Assembly (NCBI RefSeq): GCF_036365525.1
Contig: NC_090380.1
Coordinates: 72,715,757-72,779,756, forward strand
DNA length: 64,000 nucleotides
Reading direction: 5' to 3'
Source: Heterodontus francisci
Taxonomy: Eukaryota
The position numbers were made by a program, and so were the translations under genes. The notes under the pieces are model-generated. The model saw only the letters and a program-made list of their open reading frames with translations, was not told the DNA's origin and searched no databases. How positions within the stretch are numbered: the first letter of the stretch is position 1; each line of letters opens with the position of its first letter. Shown here one piece after another: positions 13,421 through 63,856 of this stretch.

Positions 13421-16400
13421 TGTTATGACCAGGTGAGAAAAGTGTCTAGGGGTCGGTCCCTCTCAGCCTTCACCTGGTCTTACTGTAACAGGGTTTAATT
13501 TTAAACACACCATGTTTTGAGCTAACCCTCGGTGAATCCTTGTTCACCACTTTCCAATTATAAGGCAAAGAAATGAGCACAGACAAGCTGTCTGAGGTTT
13601 AAAGAAGAAAAGTGAAATTTATTAAACTTAAACTCTAATTCGATTGACGCCTACGGCTACATGACGTGCCCACGCTATCATGCATACGCGATACACAGGC
13701 AAATAAGGACAGAAAAGTGCAGAAGAAAAATAAAGTGGAAAGGTTTGAGGCAATATCTGAAGAGTTTGTTACGGTTCTTCGAGCTCACTGCCAAGTCCTT
13801 TTGTAGGTTGATCTTGCTTTTCGTTGGGGCCCAGTATTCTTCTTAAACCTTGTTCACTGTAGGAGACTTTTCTCTCTTGGGGTTCATGTGTCCAAAGAAA
13901 GTCTTGGACTGGCAGACCTCATGGTCATCTGTCTGCAGTGATAATGCAGTCTCTTCTGGGGGAGCTGGTTTGATCATGGCCTCACACATTACACATTCAG
14001 GGACTCTGCAAGGGACCCTCTCCTGCCACTGCCCTGTCTCTCTGACCTCCTGTGGTCTTTCTTTCACTATTAGGGGGGCTACCACCTTCAATCCTGCCAA
14101 ATCATTACCTAGGAGCAGGTCAACCCCGTCCACAGGCAAACTAGGGACAATCCCTATGGTCACCGGTCCCAAAACTAGGTCGCAATCCAGGTGCACCCAG
14201 TGTACAGGTACAGGCATACACTGTCCTCCAATACCATTCACCACCATTTTGCTGTTCACTGCACTCTCTGGGGGAAATGTCAGGCCTTTTCCCAGTAAAA
14301 GGGATTGAGTGGCCCCTGTGTTCCTGAGAATCACTATGGGCTTGCTGGCCCCACTCGAGGGGTATGGGGTTACTTACCCTTCAAACACAAAACCCTGATA
14401 GCCTTCAGGAATCCTATTAGCTTTTCCTGCACTGGCCATAGTAAGCTTCCTGGGTTGCACTCTTACTGCAGTTAAAGCCACAGCATACTCTGCTGTGCTT
14501 TCCATCAGGGTCCTGTCTTCACTGAGCGGGTGTGCCATGATTAACCCTACTGGTTTTCCCTTTAGTTTCCAGCAGTCAGCTTTTAAATGCCCTACTTTAT
14601 TACAATGGAAGCACACAGGTCTCCGGGTCTCTCTCTTGCTCATAGCACCTTCCTTTTTAGCTGGAGGAGGGCCCCCTGTGTCTCCTGCTTTCCTTTCTCT
14701 TCCAGGACTGTCTGGGCTTCTATCGCCGTCCCACCTTTTGTCCTTTTCGGATTTGTGGGGGTGACTAGGAAAAGTTCTCCCCTAGGAAACCGACTTGTAA
14801 ATTAAAGCAAACTCATCGGCCAGAATGGCTGCCTGCCGGGCTCTCTGAACGCACTGCTCCTTTACATGGGCCTTTATTGAGAGTGGGAAAGAGTTTTTAC
14901 ATTATCTAAATTCCTCTAACAGAACTACTTCCCTGAGATTCTCATAGCAGAGCTGTACTTTAAGAGCCCTTAGCCACTGGTCAAAAGCCAGCAGATTACT
15001 TCTTTCAAACTCCAGATAAGTTTGATTAGCTTGCTTTTTGTGCATTCTAAACTTTTGGTGATAGGCTTCGGGTACTAATTCATATGTCCCAAGGATAGCA
15101 TTTTTTGTCAGTTCATAATTTGATGAACTCTCATCTGGCAAAAGGGAATAAACCTCATGGGCTTTTCCGGTTAGCTTGCTTTGCAGTAAAAAAGACCAGG
15201 TCTCAGCTGGCCATTTTAGCTGCCTTGCCAGTTTCTCAGAAGACACAAAAAATTCCTCCACATCTTCATTGAATTTTGGGATTAGTTGAGCGAGTTTTAG
15301 CAATTTTGTACCCAGCCCTGAATTATGCTCTTCCATATTGGCCATGCTTTCATTGGGGTTACTCTGTCGCCCCTTAGGTAACTCAAGCCGCTTCTGCTCT
15401 CATTCTTTGGATTCTTTCTGGAATATTGCTTCTCTCTCTCTCTCCTCTCTCACTCTCGTTCCTTCTCCTGTCTTTCTCTCTCTCTGCCCTCCCTTTTTCT
15501 TCACGTTCTTTCTGGAAGGCTCTCTCTTTCTCCCTCTCCTGTCTCTCTTTCTCTTTCCTCAAATTCAAGTTTCCTCTGTTCCAGTTGTATCTTTGCTAAC
15601 ACTCCCCTATCGGAGTCTGCTTCTAACCCTGTTTCTGCTTCTTCAGATTCAAGGGAAAAATGGTTGGCCACTAGCCTTAGGAGTTCAGACTTTCTAGCCT
15701 TGCCACGTACAGTGACCCCACACTGCTCAGCCATTTTCCTCAACTCCTCCATAGACAGCGCTTTTAACTTATACCAAGTTACTTCATGCTGGCTTGGAGA
15801 GCTACGAGCTTCAGTTGTAGACATGTTAGTATTTAATCACACACAAGCACAAGAAAACCTGAATTGAAACCTTGCTCTTTTTTGCTTGGGAACAATTTGG
15901 CTTCCCACTTCCAATTTCTCTCGTTTGTCTGTGGGTCAATTCCAGACACTAACACCCAAATTTCTGATAAAACCAGGTGAGAAAGGTGTCTCGGGGTCCC
16001 TCTCACCCTTTACCTGGTCTTACTGTAGTCTTCTTTTGGGCCTCCTTATCTCGAGAGACAATGGATACGCGCCTGGAGGTGGTCAGTGGTTTGTGAAGCA
16101 GCGCCTGGAGTGGCTATAAAGGCCAATTCTGGAGTAACAGGCTCTTCCACAGGTGCTGCAGAGAAATTTGTTTGTTGGGGCTGTTGCACAGTTGGCTCTC
16201 CCCTTGCGCCTCTGTCTTTTTTCCTGCCAACTACTAAGTCTCTTCGACTCGCCACAATTTAGCCCTGTCTTTATGGCTGCCCGCCAGCTCTGGCGAATGC
16301 TGGCAACTGACTCCCACGACTTGTGATCAATGTCACACGATTTCATGTCGCGTTTGCAGACGTCTTTATAACGGAGACATGGACGGCCGGTGGGTCTGAT

Positions 16401-17428
16401 ACCAGTGGCGAGCTCGCTGTACAATGTGTCTTTGGGGATCCTGCCATCTTCCATGCGGCTCACATGGCCAAGCCATCTCAAGCGCCGCTGACTCAGTAGT
16501 GTGTATAAGCTGGGGATGTTGGCCGCTTCAAGGACTTCTGTGTTGGAGATATAGTCCTGCCACCTGATGCCAAGTATTCTCCGAAGGCAGCGAAGATGGA
16601 ATGAATTGAGACGTCGCTCTTGGCTGGCATACGTTGTCCAGGCCTCGCTGCCGTAGAGCAAGGTGCTGAGGACACAGGCCTGATACACTCGGACTTTTGT
16701 GTTCCGTGTCAGTGCGCCATTTTCCCACACTGTAGTAGGGTTTGATTTTAAACACACTGTGTTTTGAGCTCCCCCTTGGTGAATTCTTGTTCACTGCTTT
16801 CAAGGCAAGGAAATGAACACAAACAGGCTTGCTTAGGTTAAAGAAGAAAAGTGGAAGTTATTAAACTTAAACTGTAATTCGGTTGACACCTGATGATCCA
16901 CAACGAGCTCACGCTAGCATGCATATGCAATACACACATGCAAATAGAGACAGAAAAGAGCAGAAAAAAATAAAGTGGATCGGTTTGAGGCAAAATCTGA
17001 AGAGTGTTATGGTTCTTCAAGCTCACTGTAGTCCTTTTGTAGGTTGATCTTGCTTTTTGTAGGGGTGCAGTATTCTTCTTAAACCTTATTCACTGCAGGA
17101 GACTTTTCTCTCGGGGTTCATGTGTCTTCCGTGGATTTCAGTTCCGTGAGAAAGAGATGGAAGCAGACAGGAGGAGAAGAGGTCTTTTCACTCAAGAGCA
17201 CAGAGTTTTCTGCCAGTTCAAAAACTGGTTTGACCAAGTATTTTTTGTGTATTGTATGGGAAAAGGGGATAGCTCCTTTGTTCCAACACTGTCTGCTAAT
17301 ATGCAAAATTCTCTTTCCAGCCAGGGGCCTTGGCAATTCGTTGTAATAGGCCTTCTCCTTCCAGGGACAATTTGAAATTTAATATCCATGTGCGAAATTA
17401 ATGTGCCTCATTCTTGGCCTGCATGAGA
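13421..17428 (-). mobile_element. Gypsy (Gmr1-like) LTR retrotransposon relic: two LTRs, gag with SCAN-like capsid and CCHC knuckle, dead protease, pol deleted
   Basis: LTR sequence repeated at 13421-~13890 and 15965-~17428. Gag fragments IPKFNEDVEEFF...WP...LTGKA, YELVPEAYHQKFR...LREVVLLEEF and CFHCNKVGHLKADC. Protease ILRNTGATQS (DTG to NTG). Decayed PBS-like TTGGGTGTTAGTGTCTGGAAT next to the 5' LTR. Confidence 0.88.
16030..16728 (-). mobile_element. Young 5'-truncated RTE LINE inserted in the Gypsy LTR
   Basis: 8-bp TSD ACTGTAGT at 16022-16029 and 16729-16736. Open frame, nearly identical to the 3' part of the RTE at 58040-60203. Confidence 0.95.
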
Positions 17429-17700
17429 ATGTCAATTTATCCAATTAAATTAATGACGTGATCCTCCATGGTCAGCAGATTTCTGGATAGTTGGAAAAGT
17501 TCTTCCAACTCTCAGAAATTCATAGACAAAATGGATTTTGCAATAGATTATCCAAAACAGGGACCTGGTTTCACAAAGAGTAAACTGCATTTCTGAGGCC
17601 AACTTTATTAAAGGAAAAGACATTCCTCGCATGAAACAGGAACTGAAGTTGCTTTGGTCTCGTAAGGTCTGTTCTTTCACATCAGTGTTACCGATAAAGC
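17429..17700 (+). promoter_or_regulatory. Candidate proximal promoter/5'UTR of the VJ receptor
   Basis: Unique sequence between the end of the Gypsy LTR (~17428) and the ATG. It contains ACAGGAACTGAAG at ~17636-17648, an Ets core resembling an Ets-IRF composite site. No clear TATA box. Confidence 0.4.
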
Positions 17701-17734
17701 ATGATGATTGCTACATTGCTCTTGTTTTCAGTCT
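17701..17734 (+). CDS. Leader (signal peptide) exon of the VJ receptor
   Basis: aagcATGATG encodes hydrophobic MMIATLLLFSV and ends at a consensus donor T|GTAAGT in phase 1. A 136-nt intron separates it from the V exon. Confidence 0.85.
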
Positions 17735-20700
17735 GTAAGTATATCGATTCTATATATAAGTAGTATATAAAATTAATCAGATTTTGATACCGACAGGTTT
17801 AATATAACTTGACACTATGTTAAGACATTTTAAATATCTTTATAACTTTAATGAGGTTGTATTGTAATAGGTGCTGCCACTAGATTAGAGCTGCAACAAT
17901 CTCCTCTCGCACTCTGGCTGCACGAAGGCCAGTCTGCCCATTTGGACTGCATTCTACAATCCGAGGGCAAGGTAGTAAATGGCAGTTTTTATTGGCATGT
18001 TCGTGAAGTGAAGTCTGGTGAAACGCCTGTGAGAAATATCAGTACCGAGCCAGAAGATGATCGTATCAATGTGTCCAGTAACAAAGCATCTGATTTCAAC
18101 AGCTCATTGATAATTAAAGACTTTCACATTACTGACACGGGTGTGTATTATTGCAACATCATTATTCACGAACATTTACTTTCGAGGACGATCAGAGGCG
18201 CTGGGACTCATCTGTTTATTCAAGGTAAGGGATGTTGCGGAACTGCGTATTGTTCGGGTTAGGCATTGGAATCGCCATTAAGGAGGCATATGTTGTAGGA
18301 CTGCAATTGCATGTACGAATGGTCGTGGGCTGCAGTGGGTATGAGCAGCCTCATCAGTGGTCCTTAAAGGGGTCATTAGAGGCTGCTTCAAAAACAGCTT
18401 GAAACAGTTTTTTCCACTTTTCAGCACTCCACTCAATATGTCCATCTATCCGGACATAACTTCACTAACAAATTCGTGTTTTCTTTTATACCCTTCAGCC
18501 ATAGTTTACTCGTTCCTAGAGTTCATTCCGAATCTCTACTGTTTTGAGTTTAACTAATAGCCTTTTATATGGTACTCCCAAGTAGGAAGAAAGATAGAAT
18601 CAAATATAAACAGATACGGAAACGATGAGCGCATTACCACCAGGGAAATGTATATAACGACCAAGACGAGTTACTACTTTTGGGAAGTTATTTTGAATGT
18701 AATCTGTAGTTGTGTATAAATGAGGTTATTACTTTTGAGAATGTCTACAACATGAAAAGATAATGGAACTACAACAGCAGAAAAGGACATTTGGGTGACA
18801 TTACCCATTCCTTTCAATGAAACGTATGCAATCACAGTCTCAGATCATGGAATCAGAGAATAGCTACATGTGACTAGTGGTGTTCCACTGGGATCAGTGC
18901 TGGGACCTTTGCTGTTTGTAGTATATATAAATGATTTGGAGGAAAATGTAGCTGGTGTGATTAGTAAGTTTGCGGACGACACAAAGGTTGGTGTTGTTGC
19001 GGATAATGATGAGGATCGTCAGAGGATACAGCAGGATATAGATCGGTTGGAGACTTGGGTGGAGAAATGGCAGATGGAGTTTAATCCGGACAAATGTGAG
19101 GTAATGCATATTGGAAGGTCTAATGCAGGTGGGAGGTATACAGTAAATGGCAGAACCCTTAGGAGTATTGACAGGCAGAGAGATCTGGGCGTACAGGTCC
19201 ACAGGTCACTGAAAGTGGCAACGCAGGTGGATAAGGTAATCAAGAAGGCATTCGGCATGCTTGCCTTCATCGGTCGGGGCATAGAATATAAAAATTGGCA
19301 AGTCATGTTGCAGTTGTACAGAACCTTAGTTAGGCCACACTTAGAATATTGCATGCAATTCTGGTCGCCACACTACCAGAAGGACGTGGAGGCTTTGGAG
19401 AGGGTACAGAGGAGGTTTACCAGGATGGTGCCTGGTCTGGAGGGCATTAGCTATGAGGAGAGGTTGGAAAAACTCGGATTGTTTTCACTGGAACGACGGA
19501 GGTGGAGGGGCGACATGATAGAGGTTTACAGAGTTATGAGCGGCATGGACAGAGTGGATAGTAGAAGCTTTTTCCCAGGGTGGAAGAGTCAGTTACTAGG
19601 GGACATAGTTTTAAGGTGCGAGGGGCAAAGTTTAGAGGGGATGTGCGAGGCAGGTTTTTTTTACACAGAGGGTGGTGAGTGCCTGGAACTTGCTGCCAGG
19701 GGAGGTGGTGGAAGCAGATACGATAGCGACGTTTAAGAGACATCTTGACAAATATATGAATAGGAAGGGAATAGAGGGATATGGGCCCCGGAAGTGCAGA
19801 AGGTGTTAGTTTCAGCAGGCATCAAGATTGGCGCAGGCTTGGAGGGCCGAATGGCCTGTTCCTGTGCTGCACTGTTCTTTGTTCTTTGATACAATTCTAA
19901 AGGGGGTGCAGGAACACAGAGGCCTGGGGACATATGTACACAAATTGTTGAAGGTGGCAGGGCAGGTTGAGGAAGTAGTTGAAAAAGGCATACGGGAGCC
20001 ACACCATGTGGATTTCCTCTGAAAAGAGAAGTTGGTTCTTTGAAAAAAAGAATTCTTTGAGGAACTGGCAGGCCAGTACATTTCCCAAATCATTGCACTG
20101 AGGTCCAGCAGAGACCTATTTTTGCCATTCCTGTAAAATCGATACTTTGGTCTTATGCTGACCATCTGTTGAATAGATAAATTGCTTTTTTAGATGAAAC
20201 ATTAATAGGTCATGCTTTTCAGTATGTATTTATTTATTTGTGGTTACCGCAGCAATGGAATTGAAATCCTGCCTTTTATCAAAATGATCAAATATTTACG
20301 GCTGAAAGTTTGTTTTTGAATAATTCACTTTCTAAAGTCTTTTTTTTTACAGATGTTGATCACAAGTATGATTCAATTAAAAGTAGGTGCATTATATTTT
20401 TATTTTTCATTTCCCCATTGGAATTAACTCTTTAAGGTTAATCATAACTAATGTGGTAGATGGAAATTTCAGAAGTGAGAATGAGCAGGAATATTAGAGA
20501 TAGGAAGGGACAAGAAGAACTTGAAGATTTGGAAAGCAACGATGATAAAATTGTCAACAAATCCCTTTGGAATAATTTTTTTGTTTACTAAGTGAGCTAT
20601 TACTCCTTTAAAAATAATGTAGAACAATCTGTATTATTGTGATAGACCTATAATTCCTTCCCAATTCACACAGAGCAAGTTACTGGAACCTGGACCAATT

Positions 20701-20879
20701 ACAGATTGTCCTTCTTCTCTAGTTTGCTCCAAATTATTACACCTACAGAATTACATTTGATCCAATACGATTATATTGCAGATTGCAGGACCATTCTGAA
20801 TAATCTCCTGTCAGTCATCCGCTATATTTTGTTTCTTCTGCTCATGTGTTACTTCATACTCGTTGAGAAATTCTACTAA
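17701..20879 (+). CDS. Spliced gene join(17701..17734,17871..18224,20353..20382,20782..20879): 171-aa single VJ-type Ig-domain, Arg-transmembrane receptor, NKp30/NCR3-like
   Basis: All three introns are GT-AG and phase 1, and the frame stays open from ATG 17701 to TAA 20877-20879 (34+354+30+98=516 nt). Protein: MMIATLLLFSVC AATRLELQQSPLALWLHEGQSAHLDCILQSEGKVVNGSFYWHVREVKSGETPVRNISTEPEDDRINVSSNKASDFNSSLIIKDFHITDTGVYYCNIIIHEHLLSRTIRGAGTHLFIQ DVDHKYDSIK NCRTILNNLLSVIRYILFLLLMCYFILVEKFY*. The family call is from motif resemblance only. Confidence 0.8.
17871..18224 (+). CDS. Ig V-set exon with intrinsic J-like G strand (VJ-type, non-rearranging)
   Basis: Acceptor taatag|, donor CAAG|GTAAGG, 354 nt, phase 1-1. 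Motifs: QQSP in strand A, B-strand Cys (LDC), C-strand Trp (GSFYW), DTGVYYC, diglycine bulge GAGTHLFI, four N-glycosylation sequons (NGS, NIS, NVS, NSS). No CACAGTG heptamer after YYC. Confidence 0.93.
18869..20000 (+). mobile_element. CR1 LINE fragments in intron 2 of the VJ receptor gene
   Basis: GVPLGSVLGPLLF, KFADDTK, RPHLEYCMQFWSP and 3' UTR, followed by a second short CR1 piece. Confidence 0.92.
20353..20382 (+). CDS. 30-nt stalk micro-exon of the VJ receptor (DVDHKYDSIK)
   Basis: Strong acceptor tcttttttttttacag|, donor AA|GTAGGT, symmetric phase 1-1, frame open. Confidence 0.7.
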
Positions 20880-20892
20880 ATGTGAAACAAAG
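20782..20892 (+). CDS. Transmembrane/stop exon of the VJ receptor (Cys in stalk, Arg in TM, EKFY tail)
   Basis: Acceptor attgcag| in phase 1 gives NCRTILNNLLSVIRYILFLLLMCYFILVEKFY*. The Arg codon CGC is at 20820-20822 and the stop at 20877-20879. A strong donor AAG|GTATGT at 20892/20893 implies a further non-coding 3' exon, which I could not locate. Confidence 0.8.
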
Positions 20893-21249
20893 GTATGTAA
20901 ATACACCATATTCAAAATGATGCCTGACACGTTCAGGGGTTTTCACTCCTTCATGTTACTTAATTTTAGAAAGAAGTTATCGAACCTCCTTTCTCCATTT
21001 GAGGAAAAGGCTGAAACAGGTCTTTTTAAATTTCTGACACCCACGGTTTTTGACACCATACGCTATCCTCCTCCATTACGTTTTCTCTGTTATCTAGCTC
21101 TTTCTGTGATTCTGTCCTCCTGTGATTCCATTCCTACCACCCAGCATATCTCCAGCATTGACCTATCTTCATGCTCCTGTCGCTAACTCTGGAGTCTCCC
21201 AAGGATTTATTTTTGTTCCTTTCCTGTTCCTCACCTACATGGTTCCTCT

Positions 21250-21780
21250 TGGTAACGTCATCCATGGATGTTGGTCAGCTTTCATTTGCTGACAACATCC
21301 ACATCTATCTTTCCGCCACTTTTTTCAAGCTTGTCACCACCTCTATGCGATCAGACTGCCTTTCTGACATTAAGTCATGCATGGATCATAATTTCCTCCA
21401 ACTGAATATCTGAAAGAATGAAGCCATCATGTTGGGTCCTGCTATAAATCCCATTCTTCGACTGCATTGGTGTCAATTCCACTCCACTATCTCAGGCTAA
21501 ATCAGGTCATGCAAAATGTTGAAGTTTTATTTACCCCAGAGCAGAACTTCAAATCTCAAATCCCACCAAGAATGTTCAATGTGCAGCAGTTTTTCCCTCC
21601 ATCCTACCTCACTCCCAATGCCAAAAACACCCTTAGCTGTGCGTTTTCCAACTCTATTTTTGATTACTTTAGTGTCCTTTTCACTAGCCTCATATTCTCC
21701 ACCCTTTATAAACTCAGCTATCTGTATCCTATCCTACTCATCCACCACCCCTTTCCTCACAGACCACATTAGTTCCCTGT
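21250..21780 (+). mobile_element. Old L2-type LINE fragment
   Basis: SFADNIHIYLS...SDCLSDIKSCMDHNFLQLNI matches the L2 RT pattern YADDTQLY...CL.DI..WM..NFLQLN. Confidence 0.7.
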
Positions 21781-22566
21781 AGCCCAAAATATTTATTATG
21801 TATGAAAAATGATGCACGGTCACAGCATTGATATGATGTTATGCCTATATGTGTCACTGTGAATGTTACGTCTAACATCATGTGACGGTGACTCAACTGA
21901 ACAAAAAAATTTCACTTGAAGTAATGCAAAGAAATGGAATTGCAGGCAAAAGCAAAGGTGCAATAGCGAAATAATGAACCAAAGACCAAACACAGAGCTC
22001 TCTATACGCACTGAAACCATATGTAGAAAAACCCCAAATTGCATTCAAAAGAAGAATAAGTATCCAGCCCTCATTGAGCAGCTTTATGACAATGACTACC
22101 CCTCTCATTGAAAAAGCTTTGTGACAACTAGAACCTCATTTCCCTCCACTGAGCACCTTTCCAATAGTGTCCTCCCCTTCTGAGCAGATTTTGGACAATA
22201 AGCCCCCATCAATAACTTTCAATAACTTGAACCCCTCCTCCACACTGAGCATTTTTTACTCACTACCTTCCTCTAAATAAAAACATAGGAACATAAGTAA
22301 TGGGAACATCAGTGGGAAACAGTCCATCAAACCTGCTCCGCCTGGCTGAACTTCTACCTTGACTCCACTTTCCCACACTATCTCCATATCCCTTAATCAT
22401 ATCCCTTGATTCCCTTAGTGCCCAAAAATCTACTGATCTTAGTTTTGAATATATTCATTGACATCCACAGTACTCTGGGGTAGAGAATTCAAAGATTCCT
22501 AACACTTTCTGTGAAAAAATTTCTCCCCATATTAATTCTTAATGATCTACCCCGATCTGAAACTTA

Positions 22567-24845: not shown

Positions 24846-25848
24846 GGCTGGAATTTTATGAGCCCTGTAGCAATGGGAACGGAGGCGGGGATCCCATAAA
24901 ATTGCAAGGGAAGGCAGGGGTGGAGTGCCCATTGCCTTCCTAATGGCATGGAATTTGGTACGGAGTGGGAAAGGCTGAGGACTGTCTTCCCATCCAGAGG
25001 CCAACTGAGGGCAGCTTCCCACTTCTGCTCCCATTTCACTAACATCGGAAGGGCCTGCTGCCGCATGGAGACATTGCCAGGTGAAACTAGGCGGCCTCCT
25101 AGCGGGCTCATGGGTCCCTCCTCTGGGGGGCAATCCATGACCCATGGAGGGCCCCTCTGGCAACGATGGCTGCACCTGTGGCAAGACACCTCCCACCCTC
25201 ATGGAATCCCCCCCACCTACCCCCTCACTGGGGACTGCCTGACTGGCCCCGGTGACCCTGACCCAACTTACCTGGATCCTGGGGTGTCCTCCATGTTCGC
25301 TACTGTAGGCCTCCTGCAGTACAGGCAGTAGCCACCACTCCCGATGGCGCTGCTGATCTCCGATTGGCCGACAGCCCTGGGGGCAGGAGATTGTTCCTTC
25401 AAGGCACGGTGGGTGTCACTGTGTGCGGGAGGTGGGTGGGGGGGAGGAGTGGTGGTTGAAGGTGAGAGAAAATGCTGGTGTGTCGCAAATCAGACATGAC
25501 CCCACTGATGACCGGATTTAACTGTTGGGCTTTTCGAGGCTTGCAGGAAACCCATGTGGGACAGGTCTATCAATGGTTATCAAATGCAAAGTGGCAATTG
25601 ATAGAAGATTTAAATTAACCCTGCATCCTGCCTTTAACTGCCAGCAGGCAGGTTTTGCAAGCTGTCTGAAACAACCCAAGGCCAACAAAATGATAGCACA
25701 GCGGGGATTGACAAGGCTGTGAAATTGAAAGGCTTTTGTTCACAGGATTTATTTTGAGTGTGCTTTCACTGCTTCAGAAGCGATTTCCAACACTTTGGAG
25801 CTCATTTCTGTTACTTGTGACTATTTTTGGCTTTGATCTGCATTACCT
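24846..25848. mobile_element. Harbinger-type left terminus/MITE fragment and probable 5' non-coding region of the Harbinger element
   Basis: Begins GGCTGGAATTTTA, the same TIR as the reverse complement at 23339, and interrupts the CR1. Interior resembles 22567-23339. Confidence 0.55.
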
Positions 25849-28800
25849 AGCTGTCAGTCTTCACTGCAGGATTGTCCAGCTGTCAGTCTGCACTGCAGTA
25901 TTGTCCAGCTGTCAGCCTTCACTGAAGTATTGTCCAACTGTTAGTCTTCACTGCAGTATTGTCCAGCTGTCAGTCTGCACTGCAGGATTGTCCAGCTGTC
26001 AGTCTGCACTGCAGTATTGTTCAGCTGTCAGTCTTCACTGAAGTATTGTCCAGCTGTCAGTCTTCACTGCAGTATTGTCCAGCTGTCAGTCTGCACTGCA
26101 GGATTGCCCAGCTGTCAGTCTGCACTGCAGTATTGTCCAGCTGTCAGTCTGCACTGCAGGATTGTCCGGCTGTCAGTCTTCACTGCAGTATTGTCCAGCT
26201 GTCAGTCTGCACTGCAGGATTGTCCAGCTGTCAGTCTGCACTGCAGTATTGTCCGGCTGTCAGTCTTCACTGCAGTATTGTCCGGCTGTCAGTCTTCACT
26301 GCAGTATTGTCCAGCTGTCAGTCTGCACTGCAGGATTGTCCAGCTGCCAGTCTGCACTGCAGTATTGTCCGGCTGTCAGTCTGCACTGCAGTATTGTCCG
26401 GCTGTCAGTCTGCACTGCAGTATTGTCCGGCTGTCAGTCTGCACTGCAGGATTGTCCAGCTGCCAGTCTGCACTGCAGTATTGTCCGGCTGTCAGTCTGC
26501 ACTGCAGTATTGTCCGGCTGTCAGTCTTCACTGCAGTATTGTCCGGCTGTCAGTCTGCACTGCAGGATTGTCCGGCTGTCAGTCTGCACTGCAGTATTGT
26601 CCAGCTGTCAGTCTTCACTGCAGTATTGTCCAGCTGTCAGTCTTCACTGCAGTATTGTCCGGCTGTCAGTCTTCACTGCAGTATTGTCCAGCTGTCAGTC
26701 TTCACTGCAGTATTGTCCAGCTGTCAGTCTTCACTGCAGTATTGTCCGGCTGTCAGTCTTCACTGCAGTATTGTCCAGCTGTCAGTCTTCACTGCAGTAT
26801 TGTCCGGCTGTCAGTCTTCACTGCAGTATTGTCCAGCTGTCAGTCTTCACTGCAGTATTGTCCAGCTGTCAGTCTGCACTGCAGTATTGTCCAGCTGTCA
26901 GTCTTCACTGCAGTATTGTCCAGCTGTCAGTCTTCACTGCAGTATTGTCCGGCTGTCAGTCTGCACTGCAGGATTGTCCAGCTGTCAGTCTGCACTGCAG
27001 TATTGTCCAGCTGTCAGTCTTCACTGCAGTATTGTCCAGCTGTCAGTCTTCACTGCAGTATTGTCCGGCTGTCAGTCTGCACTGCAGGATTGTCCGGCTG
27101 TCAGTCTGCACTGCAGGATTGTCCGGCTGTCAGTCTTCACTGCAGTATTGTCTGGCTGTCAGTCTTCACTGCAGTATTGTCCAGCTGTCAGTCTGCACTG
27201 CAGGATTGTCCAGCTGTCAGTCTGCACTGCAGTATTGTCCGGCTGTCAGTCTGCACTGCAGTATTGTCCAGCTGTCAGTCTTCACTGCAGTATTGTCCGG
27301 CTGTCAGTCTGCACTGCAGGATTGTCCGGCTGTCAGTCTGCACTGCAGGATTGTCCGGCTGTCAGTCTTCACTGCAGTATTGTCTGGCTGTCAGTCTTCA
27401 CTGCAGTATTGTCCAGCTGTCAGTCTGCACTGCAGGATTGTCCAGCTGTCAGTCTGCACTGCAGTATTGTCCAGCTGTCAGTCTTCACTGCAGTATTGTC
27501 CAGCTGTCAGTCTGCACTGCAGTATTGTCCAGCTGTCAGTCTTCACTGCAGTATTGTCCAGCTGTCAGTCTTCACTGCAGTATTGTCCGGCTGTCAGTCT
27601 GCACTGCAGGATTGTCCAGCTGTCAGTCTGCACTGCAGTATTGTCCAGCTGTCAGTCTTCACTGCAGTATTGTCCAGCTGTCAGTCTTCACTGCAGTATT
27701 GTCCGGCTGTCAGTCTGCACTGCAGGATTGTCCGGCTGTCAGTCTGCACTGCAGGATTGTCCGGCTGTCAGTCTTCACTGCAGTATTGTCTGGCTGTCAG
27801 TCTTCACTGCAGTATTGTCCAGCTGTCAGTCTGCACTGCAGGATTGTCCAGCTGTCAGTCTGCACTGCAGTATTGTCCGGCTGTCAGTCTTCACTGCAGT
27901 ATTGTCCAGCTGTCAGTCTGCACTGCAGGATTGTCCAGCTGTCAGTCTGCACTGCAGGATTGTCGAGCTGCCAGTCTGCACTGCAGTATTGTCCGGCTGT
28001 CAGTCTGCACTGCAGTATTGTCCGGCTGTCAGTCTTCACTGCAGTATTGTCCAGCTGTCAGTCTGCACTGCAGGATTGTCCAGCTGTCAGTCTGCACTGC
28101 AGTATTGTCCGGCTGTCAGTCTTCACTGCAGTATTGTCCAGCTGTCAGTCTGCACTGCAGTATTGTCCGGCTGTCAGTCTTCACTGCAGTATTGTCCGGC
28201 TGTCAGTCTGCACTGCAGAATTGTTCAGCTGACAGTCTGCACTGCAGTATTGTTCAGCTGCCAGTCTTCACTGCAGTATTGTTCAGCTGACAGTCTGCAC
28301 TGCAGTATTGTTCAGCTGCCAGTCTTCACTGCTGTATTGTTCAGCTGTCAGTGTTCACTGCAGTATTGTCCGGCTGTCAGTCTGCACTGCAGTATTGTTC
28401 AGCTGACAGTCTGCACTGCAGTATTGTCCGGCTGTCAGTCTGCACTGCAGTATTGTTCAGCTGACAGTCTGCACTGCAGTATTGTCCGGCTGTCAGTCTG
28501 CACTGCAGTATTGTCCGGCTGTCAGTCTGCACTGCAGTATTGTTCGGCTGACAGTCTGCACTGCAGTACTGTTCAGCTGCCAGTCTTCACTGCTGTATTG
28601 TTCAGCTGCCAGTCTTCACTGCAGTATTGTTCAGCTGCCAGTCTTCACTGCTGTATTGTTCAGCTGCCAGTCTTCACTGCAGTATTGTTCAGCTGCCAGT
28701 CTTCACTGCTGTATTGTTCAGCTGCCAGTCTTCACTGCAGTATTGTTCAGCTGCCAGTCTTCACTGCTGTATTGTTCAGCTGTCAGTCTGCACTGCAGAA

Positions 28801-31800
28801 TTGTTCAGCTGACAGTCTGCACTGCAGTATTGTTCAGCTGCCAGTCTTCACTGCAGTATTGTTCAGCTGCCAGTCTTCACTGCTGTATTGTTCAGCTGTC
28901 AGTGTTCACTGCAGTATTGTCCGGCTGTCAGTCTGCACTGCAGTATTGTTCAGCTGACAGTCTGCACTGCAGTATTGTCCGGCTGTCAGTCTGCACTGCA
29001 GTATTGTTCAGCTGACAGTCTGCACTGCAGTATTGTCCGGCTGTCAGTCTGCACTGCAGTATTGTCCGGCTGTCAGTCTGCACTGCAGTATTGTCCGGCT
29101 GTCAGTCTGCACTGCAGTATTGTTCGGCTGACAGTCTGCACTGCAGTATTGTTCAGCTGCCAGTCTTCACTGCAGTATTGTTCAGCTGTCAATCTTCGCT
29201 GCAGTATTGTTCAGCTGCCAGTCTTCACTGCTGTATTGTTCAGCTGTCAGTCTGCACTGCAGTATTGTTCAGCTGTCAGTCTGCACTGCAGTATTGTTCA
29301 GCTGACAGTCTTCACATGCTGTATTGTTCAGCTGCCAGTCTGCACTGCAGTATTGTCCAGCTGTCAGTGTTCACTGCAGTATTGTCCAGCTGTCAGTCTG
29401 CACTGCAGTATTGTTCAGCTGTCAGTCTTCACTGCAGTATTGTCCAGCTGTCAGTGTTCACTGCTGTATTGTTCAGCTGCCAGTCTTCACTGCAGTATTG
29501 TTCAGCTGCCAGTCTTCAATGCTGTATTGTTCAGCTGCCAGTCTTCACTGCTGTATTGTTCAGCTGCCAGTCTTCACTGCTGTATTGTTCAGCTGCCAGT
29601 CTTCACTGCAGTATTGTTCAGCTGCCAGTCTTCACTGCTGTATTGTTCAGCTGCCAGTCTTCACTGCAGTATTGTTCAGCTGTCAATCTTCACTGCAGGA
29701 TTGTCCAGCTGTCAGTCTGCACTGCAGTATTGTTCAGCTGTCAGTCTGCACTGCAGTATTGTTCAGCTGTCAATCTTCACTGCAGTATTGTCCAGCTGTC
29801 AGTGTTCACTGCAGTATTGTCCAGCTGTCAGTCTGCACTGCAGTATTGTTCAGCTGTCAGTCTTTACTGCAGTATTGTTCAGCTGCCATTCTGCACTGCA
29901 GTATTGTCCAGCTGTCAGTGTTCACTGCAGTATTGTCCAGCTGTCAGTCTGCACTGCAGTATTGTTCAGCTGTCAGTCTTTACTGCAGTATTGTCCAGCT
30001 GTCAGTCTTCACTGCAGTATTGTTCAGCTGCCAGTCTTCACTGCAGTATTGTTCAGCTGCCAGTCTTCACTGCAGTATTGTTCAGCTGCCAGTCTTCACT
30101 GCAGTATTGTTCAGCTGCCAGTCTTCACTGCAGTATTGTTCAGCTGTCAATCTTCACTGCAGGATTGTCCAGCTGTCAGTCTGCACTGCAGTATTGTTCA
30201 GCTGTCAGTCTGCACTGCAGTATTGTTCAGCTGTCAATCTTCACTGCAGTATTGTCCAGCTGTCAGTGTTCACTGCAGTATTGTCCAGCTGTCAGTCTGC
30301 ACTGCAGTATTGTTCAGCTGTCAGTCTTTACTGCAGTATTGTTCAGCTGCCATTCTGCACTGCAGTATTGTCCAGCTGTCAGTGTTCACTGCAGTATTGT
30401 CCAGCTGTCAGTCTGCACTGCAGTATTGTTCAGCTGTCAGTCTTTACTGCAGTATTGTCCAGCTGTCAGTCTTTACTGCAGTATTGTCCAGCTGTCAGTG
30501 TTCACTGCTGTATTGTTCAGCTGCCAGTCTTCACTGCTGTATTGTTCAGCTGCCAGTCTTCACTGCTGTATTGTTCAGCTGCCAGTCTTCACTGCAGTAT
30601 TGTTCAGCTGCCAGTCTTCACTGCAGTATTGTTCAGCTGCCAGTCTTCACTGCTGTATTGTTCAGCTGCCATTCTGCACTGCAGTATTGTCCAGCTGTCA
30701 GTGTTCACTGCAGTATTGTCCAGCTGTCAGTCTGCACTGCAGTATTGTTCAGCTGTCAGTCTTTACTGCAGTATTGTCCAGCTGTCAGTGTTCACTGCTG
30801 TATTGTTCAGCTGCCAGTCTTCACTGCTGTATTGTTCAGCTGCCAGTCTTCACTGCAGTATTGTTCAGCTGCCAGTCTTCACTGCTGTATTGTTCAGCTG
30901 CCAGTCTTCACTGCAGTATTGTTCAGCTGCCAGTCTTCACTGCAGTATTGTTCAGCTGTCAGTCTTCACTGCAGTATTGTTCAGCTGTCAATCTTCACTG
31001 CAGGATTGTCCAGCTGTCAGTCTGCACTGCAGGATTGTCCAGCTGTCAGTCTGCACTGCAGGATTGTCCAGCTGTCAGTCTGGCACTGCAGGATTGTCCA
31101 GCTGCGAGTCTGCACTGCAGGATTGTTCAGCTGTCAGTCTTCACTGCAGTATTGTTCAGCTGTCAGTCTTCACTGCAGTATTGTTCAGCTGCCAGTCTTC
31201 ACTGCAGTATTGTTCAGCTGCCAGTCTTCACTGCAGTATTGTTCAGCTGTCAGTCTGTACTGCAGTATGGAAGCAGCTGCCAGTCTGCACTGCAGTATGG
31301 AAGCAGCTGCCAGTCTTCACTGCAGTATTGTTCAGCTGTCAGTCTTTACTGCAGTATTGTTCAGCTGTCAGTCTGCACTGCAGTATTGTTCAGCTGCCAG
31401 TCTTCACTGCAGTATTGTTCAGCTGTCAGTGTTCACTGCTGTATTGTTCAGCTGCCAGTCTTCACTGCAGTATTGTTCAGCTGCCAGTCTTCACTGCAGT
31501 ATTGTTCAGCTGCCAGTCTTCACTGCAGTATTGTTCAGCTGTCAATCTTCACTGCTGTATTGTTCAGCTGTCAATCTTCACTGCTGTATTGTTCAGCTGT
31601 CAATCTTCACTGCTGTATTGTTCAGCTGTCAGTCTTCACTGCTGTATTGTTCAGCTGTCAATCTTCACTGCATTATTGTTCAGCTGTCAACCTTCACTGC
31701 TGTATTGTTCAGCTGTCAGTCTTCACTGCTGTATTGTTCAGCTGTCAATCTTCACTGCATTATTGTTCAGCTGTCAATCTTCACTGCTGTATTGTTCAGC

Positions 31801-33649
31801 TGTCAATCTTCACTGCTGTATTGTTCAGCTGTCAGTCTTCACTGCTGTATTGTTCAGCTGTCAGTCTTCACTGCTGTATTGTTCAGCTGTCAATCTTCAC
31901 TGCATTATTGTTCAGCTGTCAATCTTCACTGCTGTATTGTTCAGCTGTCAGTCTTCACTGCTGTATTGTTCAGCTGTCAATCTTCACTGCATTATTGTTC
32001 AGCTGTCAATCTTCACTGCTGTATTGTTCAGCTGTCAGTCTTCACTGCTGTATTGTTCAGCTGTCAATCTTCACTGCTGTATTGTTCAGCTGTCAATCTT
32101 CACTGCTGTATTGTTCAGCTGTCAATCTTCACTGCAGTATTGTTCAGCTGTCAGTCTTCACTGCAGTATTGTCCAGCTGTCAGTCTTCACTGCAGTATTG
32201 TTCAGCTGCCAGTCTTCACTGCAGTATTGTTCAGCTGCCAGTCTTCACTGCAGTATTGTTCAGATGCCAGTCTTCACTGCAGTATTGTTCAGCTGTCAGT
32301 CTGCACTGCAGTATTGTTCAGCTGTCAGTCTTCACTGCAGTATTGTTCAGCTACCAGTCTTCACTGCAGTATTGTTCAGCTGTCAGTCTGCACTGCTGTA
32401 TTGTTCAGCTGCCAGTCTTCACTGCAGTATTGTTCAGCTGCCAGTCTTCACTGCAGTATTGTTCAGCTGCCAGTCTTCACTGCTGTATTGTTCAGCTGTC
32501 AGTCTTCACTGCAGTATTGTTCAGCTGCCAGTCTTCACTGCAGTATTGTTCAGCTGCCAGTCTTCACTGCTGTATTGTTCAGCTGCCAGTCTGCACTGCA
32601 GTATTGTTCAGCTGCCAGTCTTCACTGCAGTATTGTTCAGATGCCAGTCTTCACTGCAGTATTGTTCAGCTGTCAGTCTGCACTGCAGTATTGTTCAGCT
32701 GTCAGTCTTCACTGCAGTATTGTTCAGCTGCCAGTCTTCACTGCAGTATTGTTCAGCTGTCAGTCTGCACTGCAGTATTGTTCAGCTGCCAGTCTTCACT
32801 GCAGTATTGTTCAGCTGCCAGTCTTCACTGCAGTATTGTTCAGATGCCAGTCTTCACTGCAGTATTGACCAGCCGTCAGTCTGCACTGCAGTATTGTTCA
32901 GGTGCCAGTCTTCACTGCAGTATTGTTCAGCTGCCAGTCTTCACTGCAGTATTGTTCAGATGCCAGTCTTCACTGCAGTATTGTTCAGCTGTCAGTCTGC
33001 ACTGCAGTATTGTTCAGCTGTCAGTCTTCACTGCAGTATTGTTCAGCTGCCAGTCTTCACTGCAGTATTGTTCAGCTGTCAGTCTGCACTGCAGTATTGT
33101 TCAGCTGCCAGTCTTCACTGCAGTATTGTTCAGCTGCCAGTCTTCACTGCAGTATTGTTCAGCTGCCAGTCTTCACTGCAGTATTGTTCAGATGCCAGTC
33201 TTCACTGCAGTATTGACCAGCCGTCAGTCTGCACTGCAGTATGGGCCAGCCTTCAGTCTGCACTGCCGTTAGGGCCAGCCGTCAGTCTGCACTGCAGTAT
33301 GGGCCAGCTGTCAGTCTGCACTGCAGTATGGGCCAGCCTTCAGTCTGCACTGCCGTTAGGTCCAGCTGTCAGTCTGCACTGCAGTATGGGCGAGCTGTCA
33401 GTCTGCACTGCAGTATGGGCCAGCCTTCAGTCTGCACTGCAGTATGGGCCAGCCGTCAGTCTGCACTGCCGTATGGGCCAGCCGTCAGTCTGCACTGCCG
33501 TATGGGCCAGCTGTCAGTCTGCACTGCAGTATGGGCCAGCCATCAGTCTGAACTGCAGTAATGGCCAGCCGTCAGTCTGCACTGCAGTAATGGCCAGCCG
33601 TCAGTCTGCACTGCAGTAATGGCCAGCCGTCAGTCTGCACTGCAGTATG
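25849..33649. repeat. 29-bp minisatellite array, ~269 units, consensus CAGCTGTCAGTCT(T/G)CACTGCAGTATTGT(C/T)
   Basis: Directly visible 29-nt periodicity over ~7.8 kb. Rare variants recur at exact multiples of 29, e.g. tctgg at 27151, 27383 and 27789. Confidence 0.98.
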
Positions 33650-63517: not shown

Positions 63518-63856
63518 AGACAGTCACTGTTTCTACTGATCAGCATACTGGTGCGGAGATTGGCAAACATGTCATCCTCAAGTGTACTTTTGATCAGATT
63601 GACAATAACCCGACAGTGATGTGGGAGAAGGTAGGTGTGAAACAAACCGTGCACCAATACAAGGGAAACGTTGATGACTTCAGTGAACAGCACGGCAACT
63701 ACACCAAGAGAACTGAAATTGATGGAAGCACAATCAAAAAAGGAGATGCATCTCTTACACTGAAGAATGTTAATATCTGGGATGAAGGAATTTACAAGTG
63801 CAGTGTCAGTAATGATCATGGATTCGGAGAAGCATTCATGAATCTGTCTGTTTGGG
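63518..63856 (+). CDS. IgV exon of a B7-family gene, most similar in motif to B7-H4/VTCN1; partial, gene continues beyond the window
   Basis: Acceptor tttcattccttattcag|, donor TGG G|GTATGT, 339 nt, phase 1-1. Translation: TVTVSTDQHTGAEIGKHVILKCTFDQIDNNPTVMWEKVGVKQTVHQYKGNVDDFSEQHGNYTKRTEIDGSTIKKGDASLTLKNVNIWDEGIYKCSVSNDHGFGEAFMNLSVW. B7/butyrophilin hallmarks: IG..xILxCTF, VH.Y..G.D...EQ...Y..RT, GDASLxLKNV, DEGxYxC. The ORF track catches only 63616 onward. Confidence 0.88.

Follow-up and report, generated by a model that had tools for sequence, protein, structure and literature searches.

A spliced horn shark gene for a short-tailed VJ-type receptor with a transmembrane arginine, and its relationship to NKp30/NCR3

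What does a locus encode when the list of its open reading frames (ORFs) offers only a 106-residue fragment of an immunoglobulin-like domain? We analyzed a stretch of 64,000 nucleotides from the horn shark Heterodontus francisci (NCBI RefSeq assembly GCF_036365525.1, contig NC_090380.1, positions 72,715,757 to 72,779,756 of the forward strand), referred to here as the window, with coordinates counted from its first nucleotide. An initial annotation had proposed that positions 17701-20892 hide a complete gene for an activating receptor resembling NKp30 (NCR3), of which the ORF list holds just the part at 17942-18262. The list does contain only that fragment, and the whole 171-residue frame is present around it. 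This is a real, spliced shark gene encoding a 171-residue type I receptor with a VJ domain, and we consider it likely that it represents a selachian lineage of its own among the VJ (NCR3-like) receptors of sharks. Rather than a new kind of receptor, it is a further member of an established, NKp30-like kind.

The gene lies on the plus strand and has four coding exons. Exon 1 (17671..17734) includes 5′ untranslated region (UTR) reaching back to at least 17671 in a contig from run X1 (see below); its coding part, 17701-17734, begins with the start codon at 17701 and encodes the leader MMIATLLLFSV plus one nucleotide, the first base of a Cys codon. Exon 2 (17871..18224) encodes a VJ-type immunoglobulin variable (IgV) domain: its 117 whole codons (17873-18223) run from AATRLELQQSP to the J-like RGAGTHLFIQ and include the canonical Cys26, Trp41 and Cys94. 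Exon 3 (20353..20382) is a 30-nt mini-exon for the stalk, (D)VDHKYDSIK(N). Exon 4 (20782..20892) encodes, from 20782, the peptide CRTILNNLLSVIRYILFLLLMCYFILVEKFY, made up of the stalk residues Cys-Arg, an Arg-bearing transmembrane (TM) segment (LLSVIRYILFLLLMCYFILV) and the tail EKFY, followed by a stop codon at 20877-20879 and 13 nt of 3′ UTR. All junctions are in phase 1, with the three split codons encoding Cys, Asp and Asn, and all introns are GT..AG, with donors TCT/GTAAGT, AAG/GTAAGG and AAA/GTAGGT after exons 1 to 3 and, at each acceptor, a pyrimidine-rich tract ending in AG. Adding up the exons gives 11+1+117+1+9+1+31 = 171 residues. This four-exon model is far beyond chance. Exon-wise translation and transcript contigs agree with the four phase-1-joined exons and the protein length that had been proposed, and the stalk Cys, TM Arg and EKFY tail are all present in the exon 4 translation. 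Exon 4 ends at 20892, 13 nt past the stop, at a strong donor (AAG/GTATGT, donor at 20893), and because the X1 and X2 contigs extend 231 and 468 nt past 20892, a fifth, non-coding exon lies outside the mapped region, 17300-22300.

Are these exons joined in transcripts? Onto that region we mapped contigs from four runs (X1, X2, X5 and X8) representing three organisms: X1 and X2 are one sample of organism A, the same organism as that of the window, and organisms B (X5) and C (X8) are related ones. Of the words sampled from 17650-18300, some runs contained roughly half, as expected from exons alone. In both X1 and X2, a single contig (790 and 1004 nt, respectively) spans the gene and carries the joints 17734>17871, 18224>20353 and 20382>20782, all GT..AG, with 0 mismatches to the genome in exon 2 and exon 4; these are precisely the three junctions that the initial annotation had singled out for checking in RNA. 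(The mapping places the second joint at 18222>20351, marked “cut +2”, with 100% contig identity over 17871-18222.) On the exon 1 side of the first joint, the X1 contig contributes 64 nt. Intron depth is zero save for a multi-copy fragment of a long interspersed nuclear element (LINE) at 18.8-20.0 kb, and since the introns are uncovered, the runs behave as RNA.

The related organisms use the same splice sites. The 488-nt contig of X5 carries joints 2 and 3 with 9 differences in 353 nt (~97% identity), and X8 carries joint 2, differing 27 times over 217 nt (~88% identity); exon 3 of X8 ends in 9 nt that are diverged in sequence and unchanged in length. Of the organism-B differences listed for the V exon, all 7 alter an amino acid, which is suggestive of rapid evolution of the ectodomain, the number being too small for a test. 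The V exon joins the 30-nt stalk exon in 4 of 4 runs and continues to the TM exon in the three longer contigs, and no contig from these four runs and three organisms joins it to a C-domain exon. The absence of a C domain from the receptor, as first proposed, is thus seen in transcripts that splice V directly to stalk and TM; this is not the arrangement of a germline-joined immunoglobulin or T-cell receptor (TCR) gene, in which splicing joins the V(J) exon to a C exon.

What kind of V domain does exon 2 encode? It matches the Pfam V-set family (E 2.4e-11), and we are confident that it is a VJ-type IgV. The earlier description of V and a J-like GxGT G strand germline-joined in a single exon agrees with the transcript, which equals the germline sequence over the exon. 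Four N-glycosylation sequons are present, of which N36 and N55 are kept in all three members of the family described below. An AlphaFold2 model built from only 3 aligned sequences was unusable (predicted local distance difference test score, pLDDT, of 36), and we used instead a 22-sequence alignment, for which pLDDT was 91.4 and strands A, A′, B, C, C′, D, E, F and G were predicted, with a long F-G hairpin, a break of the G strand at GAG and no C″ strand. The hairpin is longer than that of NKp30, in line with the longer F-G loop (resembling complementarity-determining region 3) noted initially. The top structural matches found with Foldseek and VIA-align are antigen-receptor V domains, all tied: IgNAR V (Z 15.6, TM-score about 0.8), TCR delta V (Z 15.4), TCR beta and antibody V, with CD8 alpha-alpha (Z 14.1) also among the tied matches. 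These fold searches do not separate NKp30 from other V domains, and the ESM Atlas returned generic V-set neighbours only.

In sequence comparison with the PDB, the single V exon finds TCR V-alpha best, including J (E 6e-7), and NKp30 has no place among its best 60 matches. A profile of the three family members again matches TCR V-alpha including the J region (E 1.8e-9, 41 bits), and it also matches human NKp30 (9FWW, 3PV6, 6YJP, 3NOI) over the whole domain with E 3e-6 and 30 bits, the strongest full-domain match that any of the listed non-rearranging receptors gives. For comparison, a nurse-shark NCR3 (QTT61904.1) used as the query matches human NKp30 at 7.9e-9. The proposed likeness of the V domain to NKp30 is therefore upheld in part: the whole-domain profile match speaks for it, but TCR V-alpha scores closer. 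TCR V-alpha gives the best sequence match and IgNAR V the best structural match, and IgNAR V, like the prediction for the shark V, lacks strand C″; unlike the TCR and IgNAR V domains, however, the shark receptor has V and J in one germline exon, a transcript that matches the genome, and no C domain.

Does the gene have relatives? An exhaustive HMMER scan of 1.84 billion representative sequences found two close ones, both of 171 aa: XP_078088791.1 of Mustelus asterias (P0001; E 1e-35; “uncharacterized protein LOC144506486”) and XP_043556870.1 of Chiloscyllium plagiosum (P0002; E 4e-26; “CD8 beta chain-like”), whose V domains are 63% and 53% identical to that of the window gene, respectively. 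Judged by sequence, the Mustelus protein is the ortholog of the window gene: its leader MMLATLLLFAAC corresponds to the exon 1 leader, and its TM segment and tail (TILNNLQSVVRYILFVLLMCYFILVETFY) are 86% identical to ours, retaining the Arg, a Cys within the TM segment and the final FY. The whole receptor layout is therefore conserved in a second shark order. The Mustelus stalk is also 13 aa long, of unrelated sequence and without Cys. A disulfide-linked dimer, which the initial annotation had entertained, is consequently not a conserved trait of the family, since the stalk Cys is species-specific.

A word-indexed protein search with the V exon matched nothing, including no protein of its own genome, and the corresponding searches with the Mustelus protein and the nurse-shark NCR3 returned at most the query itself or three matches. 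Because the same collection does include other horn shark RefSeq proteins, the gene appears to be unannotated in the horn shark, and in that sense the description of it as hidden was apt. We found no paper describing XP_078088791.1 or XP_043556870.1. The RefSeq name of the latter, “CD8 beta chain-like”, looks wrong. Another Chiloscyllium plagiosum protein (P0098), 82% identical to the nurse-shark NCR3 QTT61904.1, carries the RefSeq name “cd79b”, probably also through automatic misnaming.

How might the receptor work? Its parts are, in order, a short leader for the secretory pathway, one non-rearranging VJ IgV domain, a 13-aa stalk, a TM helix and a 4-aa tail; the best 19-mer of the TM helix has a hydropathy of 2.46, and the Arg lies four residues into the core, near the outer end. 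The V domain would bind a ligand. The tail has no signalling motif of its own, and the conserved TM Arg would therefore recruit an adaptor that has a TM Asp and immunoreceptor tyrosine-based activation motifs (ITAMs), of the FcR-gamma/CD3-zeta type or possibly DAP12, and ligand binding would then lead to cell activation, as in NKp30. Conservation is higher in the TM segment than in the ectodomain, which fits contact of the former with a partner. By analogy, we infer an activating function through an ITAM adaptor, a plausible mechanism; as the initial annotation suggested, the gene may be expressed in natural killer (NK) or T cells. In NKp30 itself, an Ig domain and a short stalk are joined to a TM segment that makes a charge contact with CD3-zeta, with coupling to FcR-gamma as well (PMC12272517).

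Several points weigh against reading the gene as a spliced, NKp30-like activating receptor with shark relatives of the same kind. The pairing with an adaptor is drawn purely by analogy with NKp30, and in the tree described below the gene lies at a distance from the sequences named NCR3. In the J motif, the Phe or Trp that usually precedes GxG is replaced by R, M or T across the three family members. The RNA label of the four runs is a guess, supported by their uncovered introns. Finally, the C-terminus of the Chiloscyllium protein is different and has no TM segment, which may reflect an error in predicting the last exon, or else a secreted form.

The most serious alternative, which we regard as a real but clearly lesser possibility, is that the gene is a bona fide shark NCR3: either one of the eight nurse-shark subtypes (MT914154-MT914161) reportedly published by Kinlein et al. 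in 2021 or a ninth, a paralog that is now outside the major histocompatibility complex (MHC). The layout is one argument for this alternative. Like the window gene, nurse-shark (Ginglymostoma cirratum) NCR3 QTT61904.1 has a leader, one VJ IgV domain, a short stalk, a basic TM segment and essentially no tail, and the two proteins are 170 and 171 aa long; they differ in the basic TM residue (Lys in QTT61904.1, Arg here) and in the J strand, which is a canonical FGPGTRLTV in QTT61904.1 and RGAGTHLFI here. Human NKp30 shares the single Ig domain, the J-like G strand within the same exon, the short stalk and the TM Arg, but has a longer cytoplasmic tail that varies with the exon-4 isoform. The architecture originally claimed for the gene agrees with that of NKp30 and closely with that of the nurse-shark NCR3, and the Arg-bearing TM segment and 4-aa tail are kept in Mustelus. 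As in NKp30, a C domain is absent from the window receptor, the stalk is short and the type I TM segment has a basic residue, with adaptor binding being predicted; its transcript contains no C exon, and it accordingly does not have the layout of a VJ domain plus one or more C1 domains found in shark SIRP-like or UrIg-type proteins.

The sequence evidence on NCR3 membership is divided. For all three members, QTT61904.1 consistently ranks second or third among the domains outside the family, alongside an Ig-like protein of a frog, and the whole-domain profile match to human NKp30 described above also favors the NCR3 assignment. Identity between the V domains of the window gene and QTT61904.1 (P0080) is, however, just 30%, and in the reciprocal search from QTT61904.1 the window V ranks only 19th, after several multi-VJ shark proteins. 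We built an IQ-TREE phylogeny of 110 VJ domains over 122 columns, with human NKp30 and the other published shark NCR3 subtypes lying outside the set. The three family members form their own clade, with a support of 97 in the Shimodaira–Hasegawa-like approximate likelihood ratio test (SH-aLRT), that is not sister to the NCR3-named shark sequences, and a branch with 98% SH-aLRT parts the NCR3-named group from 86 rows that include the family. On the other side, the approximately unbiased (AU) test did not reject a joint clade of the family and the NCR3-named sequences (p 0.32, with 122 columns). The genomic setting may also speak against NCR3: NCR3 genes are reported to be MHC-linked in both human and shark, but the 64-kb window contains no MHC genes, and the only neighbour seen is B7-H4-like. 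The initial hedge, an NCR3 paralog or an undescribed lineage, stands, with the evidence (the family's own clade on one side, the AU result on the other) leaning toward a separate lineage; on these comparisons, orthology to NCR3 is not demonstrated for the window gene.

Could the protein instead be a non-signalling partner chain, a co-receptor resembling CD8-beta, or a decoy, with the TM Arg serving assembly with another receptor chain? We think this improbable. The RefSeq name of XP_043556870.1 and the presence of CD8 alpha-alpha among the tied structural matches can be cited for it, as can the VJ type of the V domain, CD8 being listed among VJ members of the immunoglobulin superfamily (PMC11599192). 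The sequence matches give a different answer, as no CD8 chain is among the best 60 for the profile. Nor does the layout agree: CD8-beta has a long Ser/Thr/Pro-rich (O-glycosylated) hinge and a cytoplasmic tail, and its TM segment contains no basic residue, whereas the window receptor has a stalk of 13 aa, a TM Arg and a tail of 4 aa.

Returning to the reading of the gene as a separate lineage of NKp30-like receptors, we asked what surrounds it. Between 18.2 and 63.4 kb, tblastn searches found no further Ig-like exon, and in the rest of the window they found no V or TM exon paralogous to those of the receptor. The sole other gene piece, 43 kb from the receptor, is a B7-family IgV exon at 63518-63856 (plus strand), phase 1 at both ends, whose best match among solved structures is human VTCN1 (B7-H4; 4GOS, E 2.7e-15), followed by CD276 (B7-H3); the remainder of this B7-H4-like gene lies beyond the window end. 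In human, VTCN1 is adjacent to TTF2 at 1p13, an MHC paralogous region, and the shark neighbourhood hints that the receptor gene lies outside the MHC proper.

A bolder reading of this neighbourhood, to which we give very little weight, is that the gene belongs to an ancient, separate, non-rearranging VJ lineage in an MHC-paralogous region like human 1p13, beside B7-H4, and perhaps encodes the counter-receptor of the neighbouring B7-H4-like ligand. The linked, co-evolving pair of NKp30 and B7H6 may offer a parallel. A complex prediction for the receptor V with the neighbouring B7-H4-like V scored 0.00, a result that counts neither way. To our knowledge, the receptor for B7-H4 is still unknown in mammals, and such a shark pair, if true, would point to it.

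The least probable alternative, an expressed pseudogene or other transcribed non-functional relic, could draw on the transposon-rich surroundings and on the 7 of 7 non-synonymous organism-B differences in the V exon, which could mean relaxed constraint, but we consider it very unlikely in view of the 171-aa frame intact here and in Mustelus, the TM segment 86% conserved across shark orders, the splice sites precisely used in three organisms, and the fact that fast ectodomain change is normal for immune receptors.

Why would a separate lineage of this kind matter? Non-rearranging VJ domains are candidate relatives of the exon that was split by the RAG transposon and gave rise to antibodies and T-cell receptors. 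Sharks retain many of these domains, and the window gene adds a conserved, expressed and minimal example, consisting of little more than a V domain and a TM Arg, with no tail. Its V domain is nearer to TCR V-alpha and IgNAR V than to NKp30, and the gene seems to lie outside the MHC, beside a B7-family gene. The relatives bear uninformative or wrong automatic names. For shark immunology, the gene supplies a defined candidate activating receptor for work on cell type, adaptor and ligand.

Most of the rest of the window consists of transposons, among them LINE reverse-transcriptase fragments and a gag zinc-knuckle element, together with a long minisatellite. One LINE reverse-transcriptase fragment (18864..19733, plus strand; Pfam RVT_1, 5e-13) lies in intron 2 of the receptor gene, outside the protein, and accounts for the intronic contig depth mentioned above: in each of the three organisms, diverged RNA contigs with many mismatches map to it by the thousand and at very great depth, a pattern that suggests a repeat family which is abundant and transcribed. 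On the minus strand at 13846-15399, a protease-like ORF adjoins a gag-like ORF that contains a CCHC zinc knuckle, which suggests the remnant of a long terminal repeat (LTR) retroelement. The minisatellite is a very long tandem array at 25712-33616 (plus strand); several of its reading frames are open, with peptide repeats such as SIVQLSVCTAVLSSCQSALQYCPAVSLHC.

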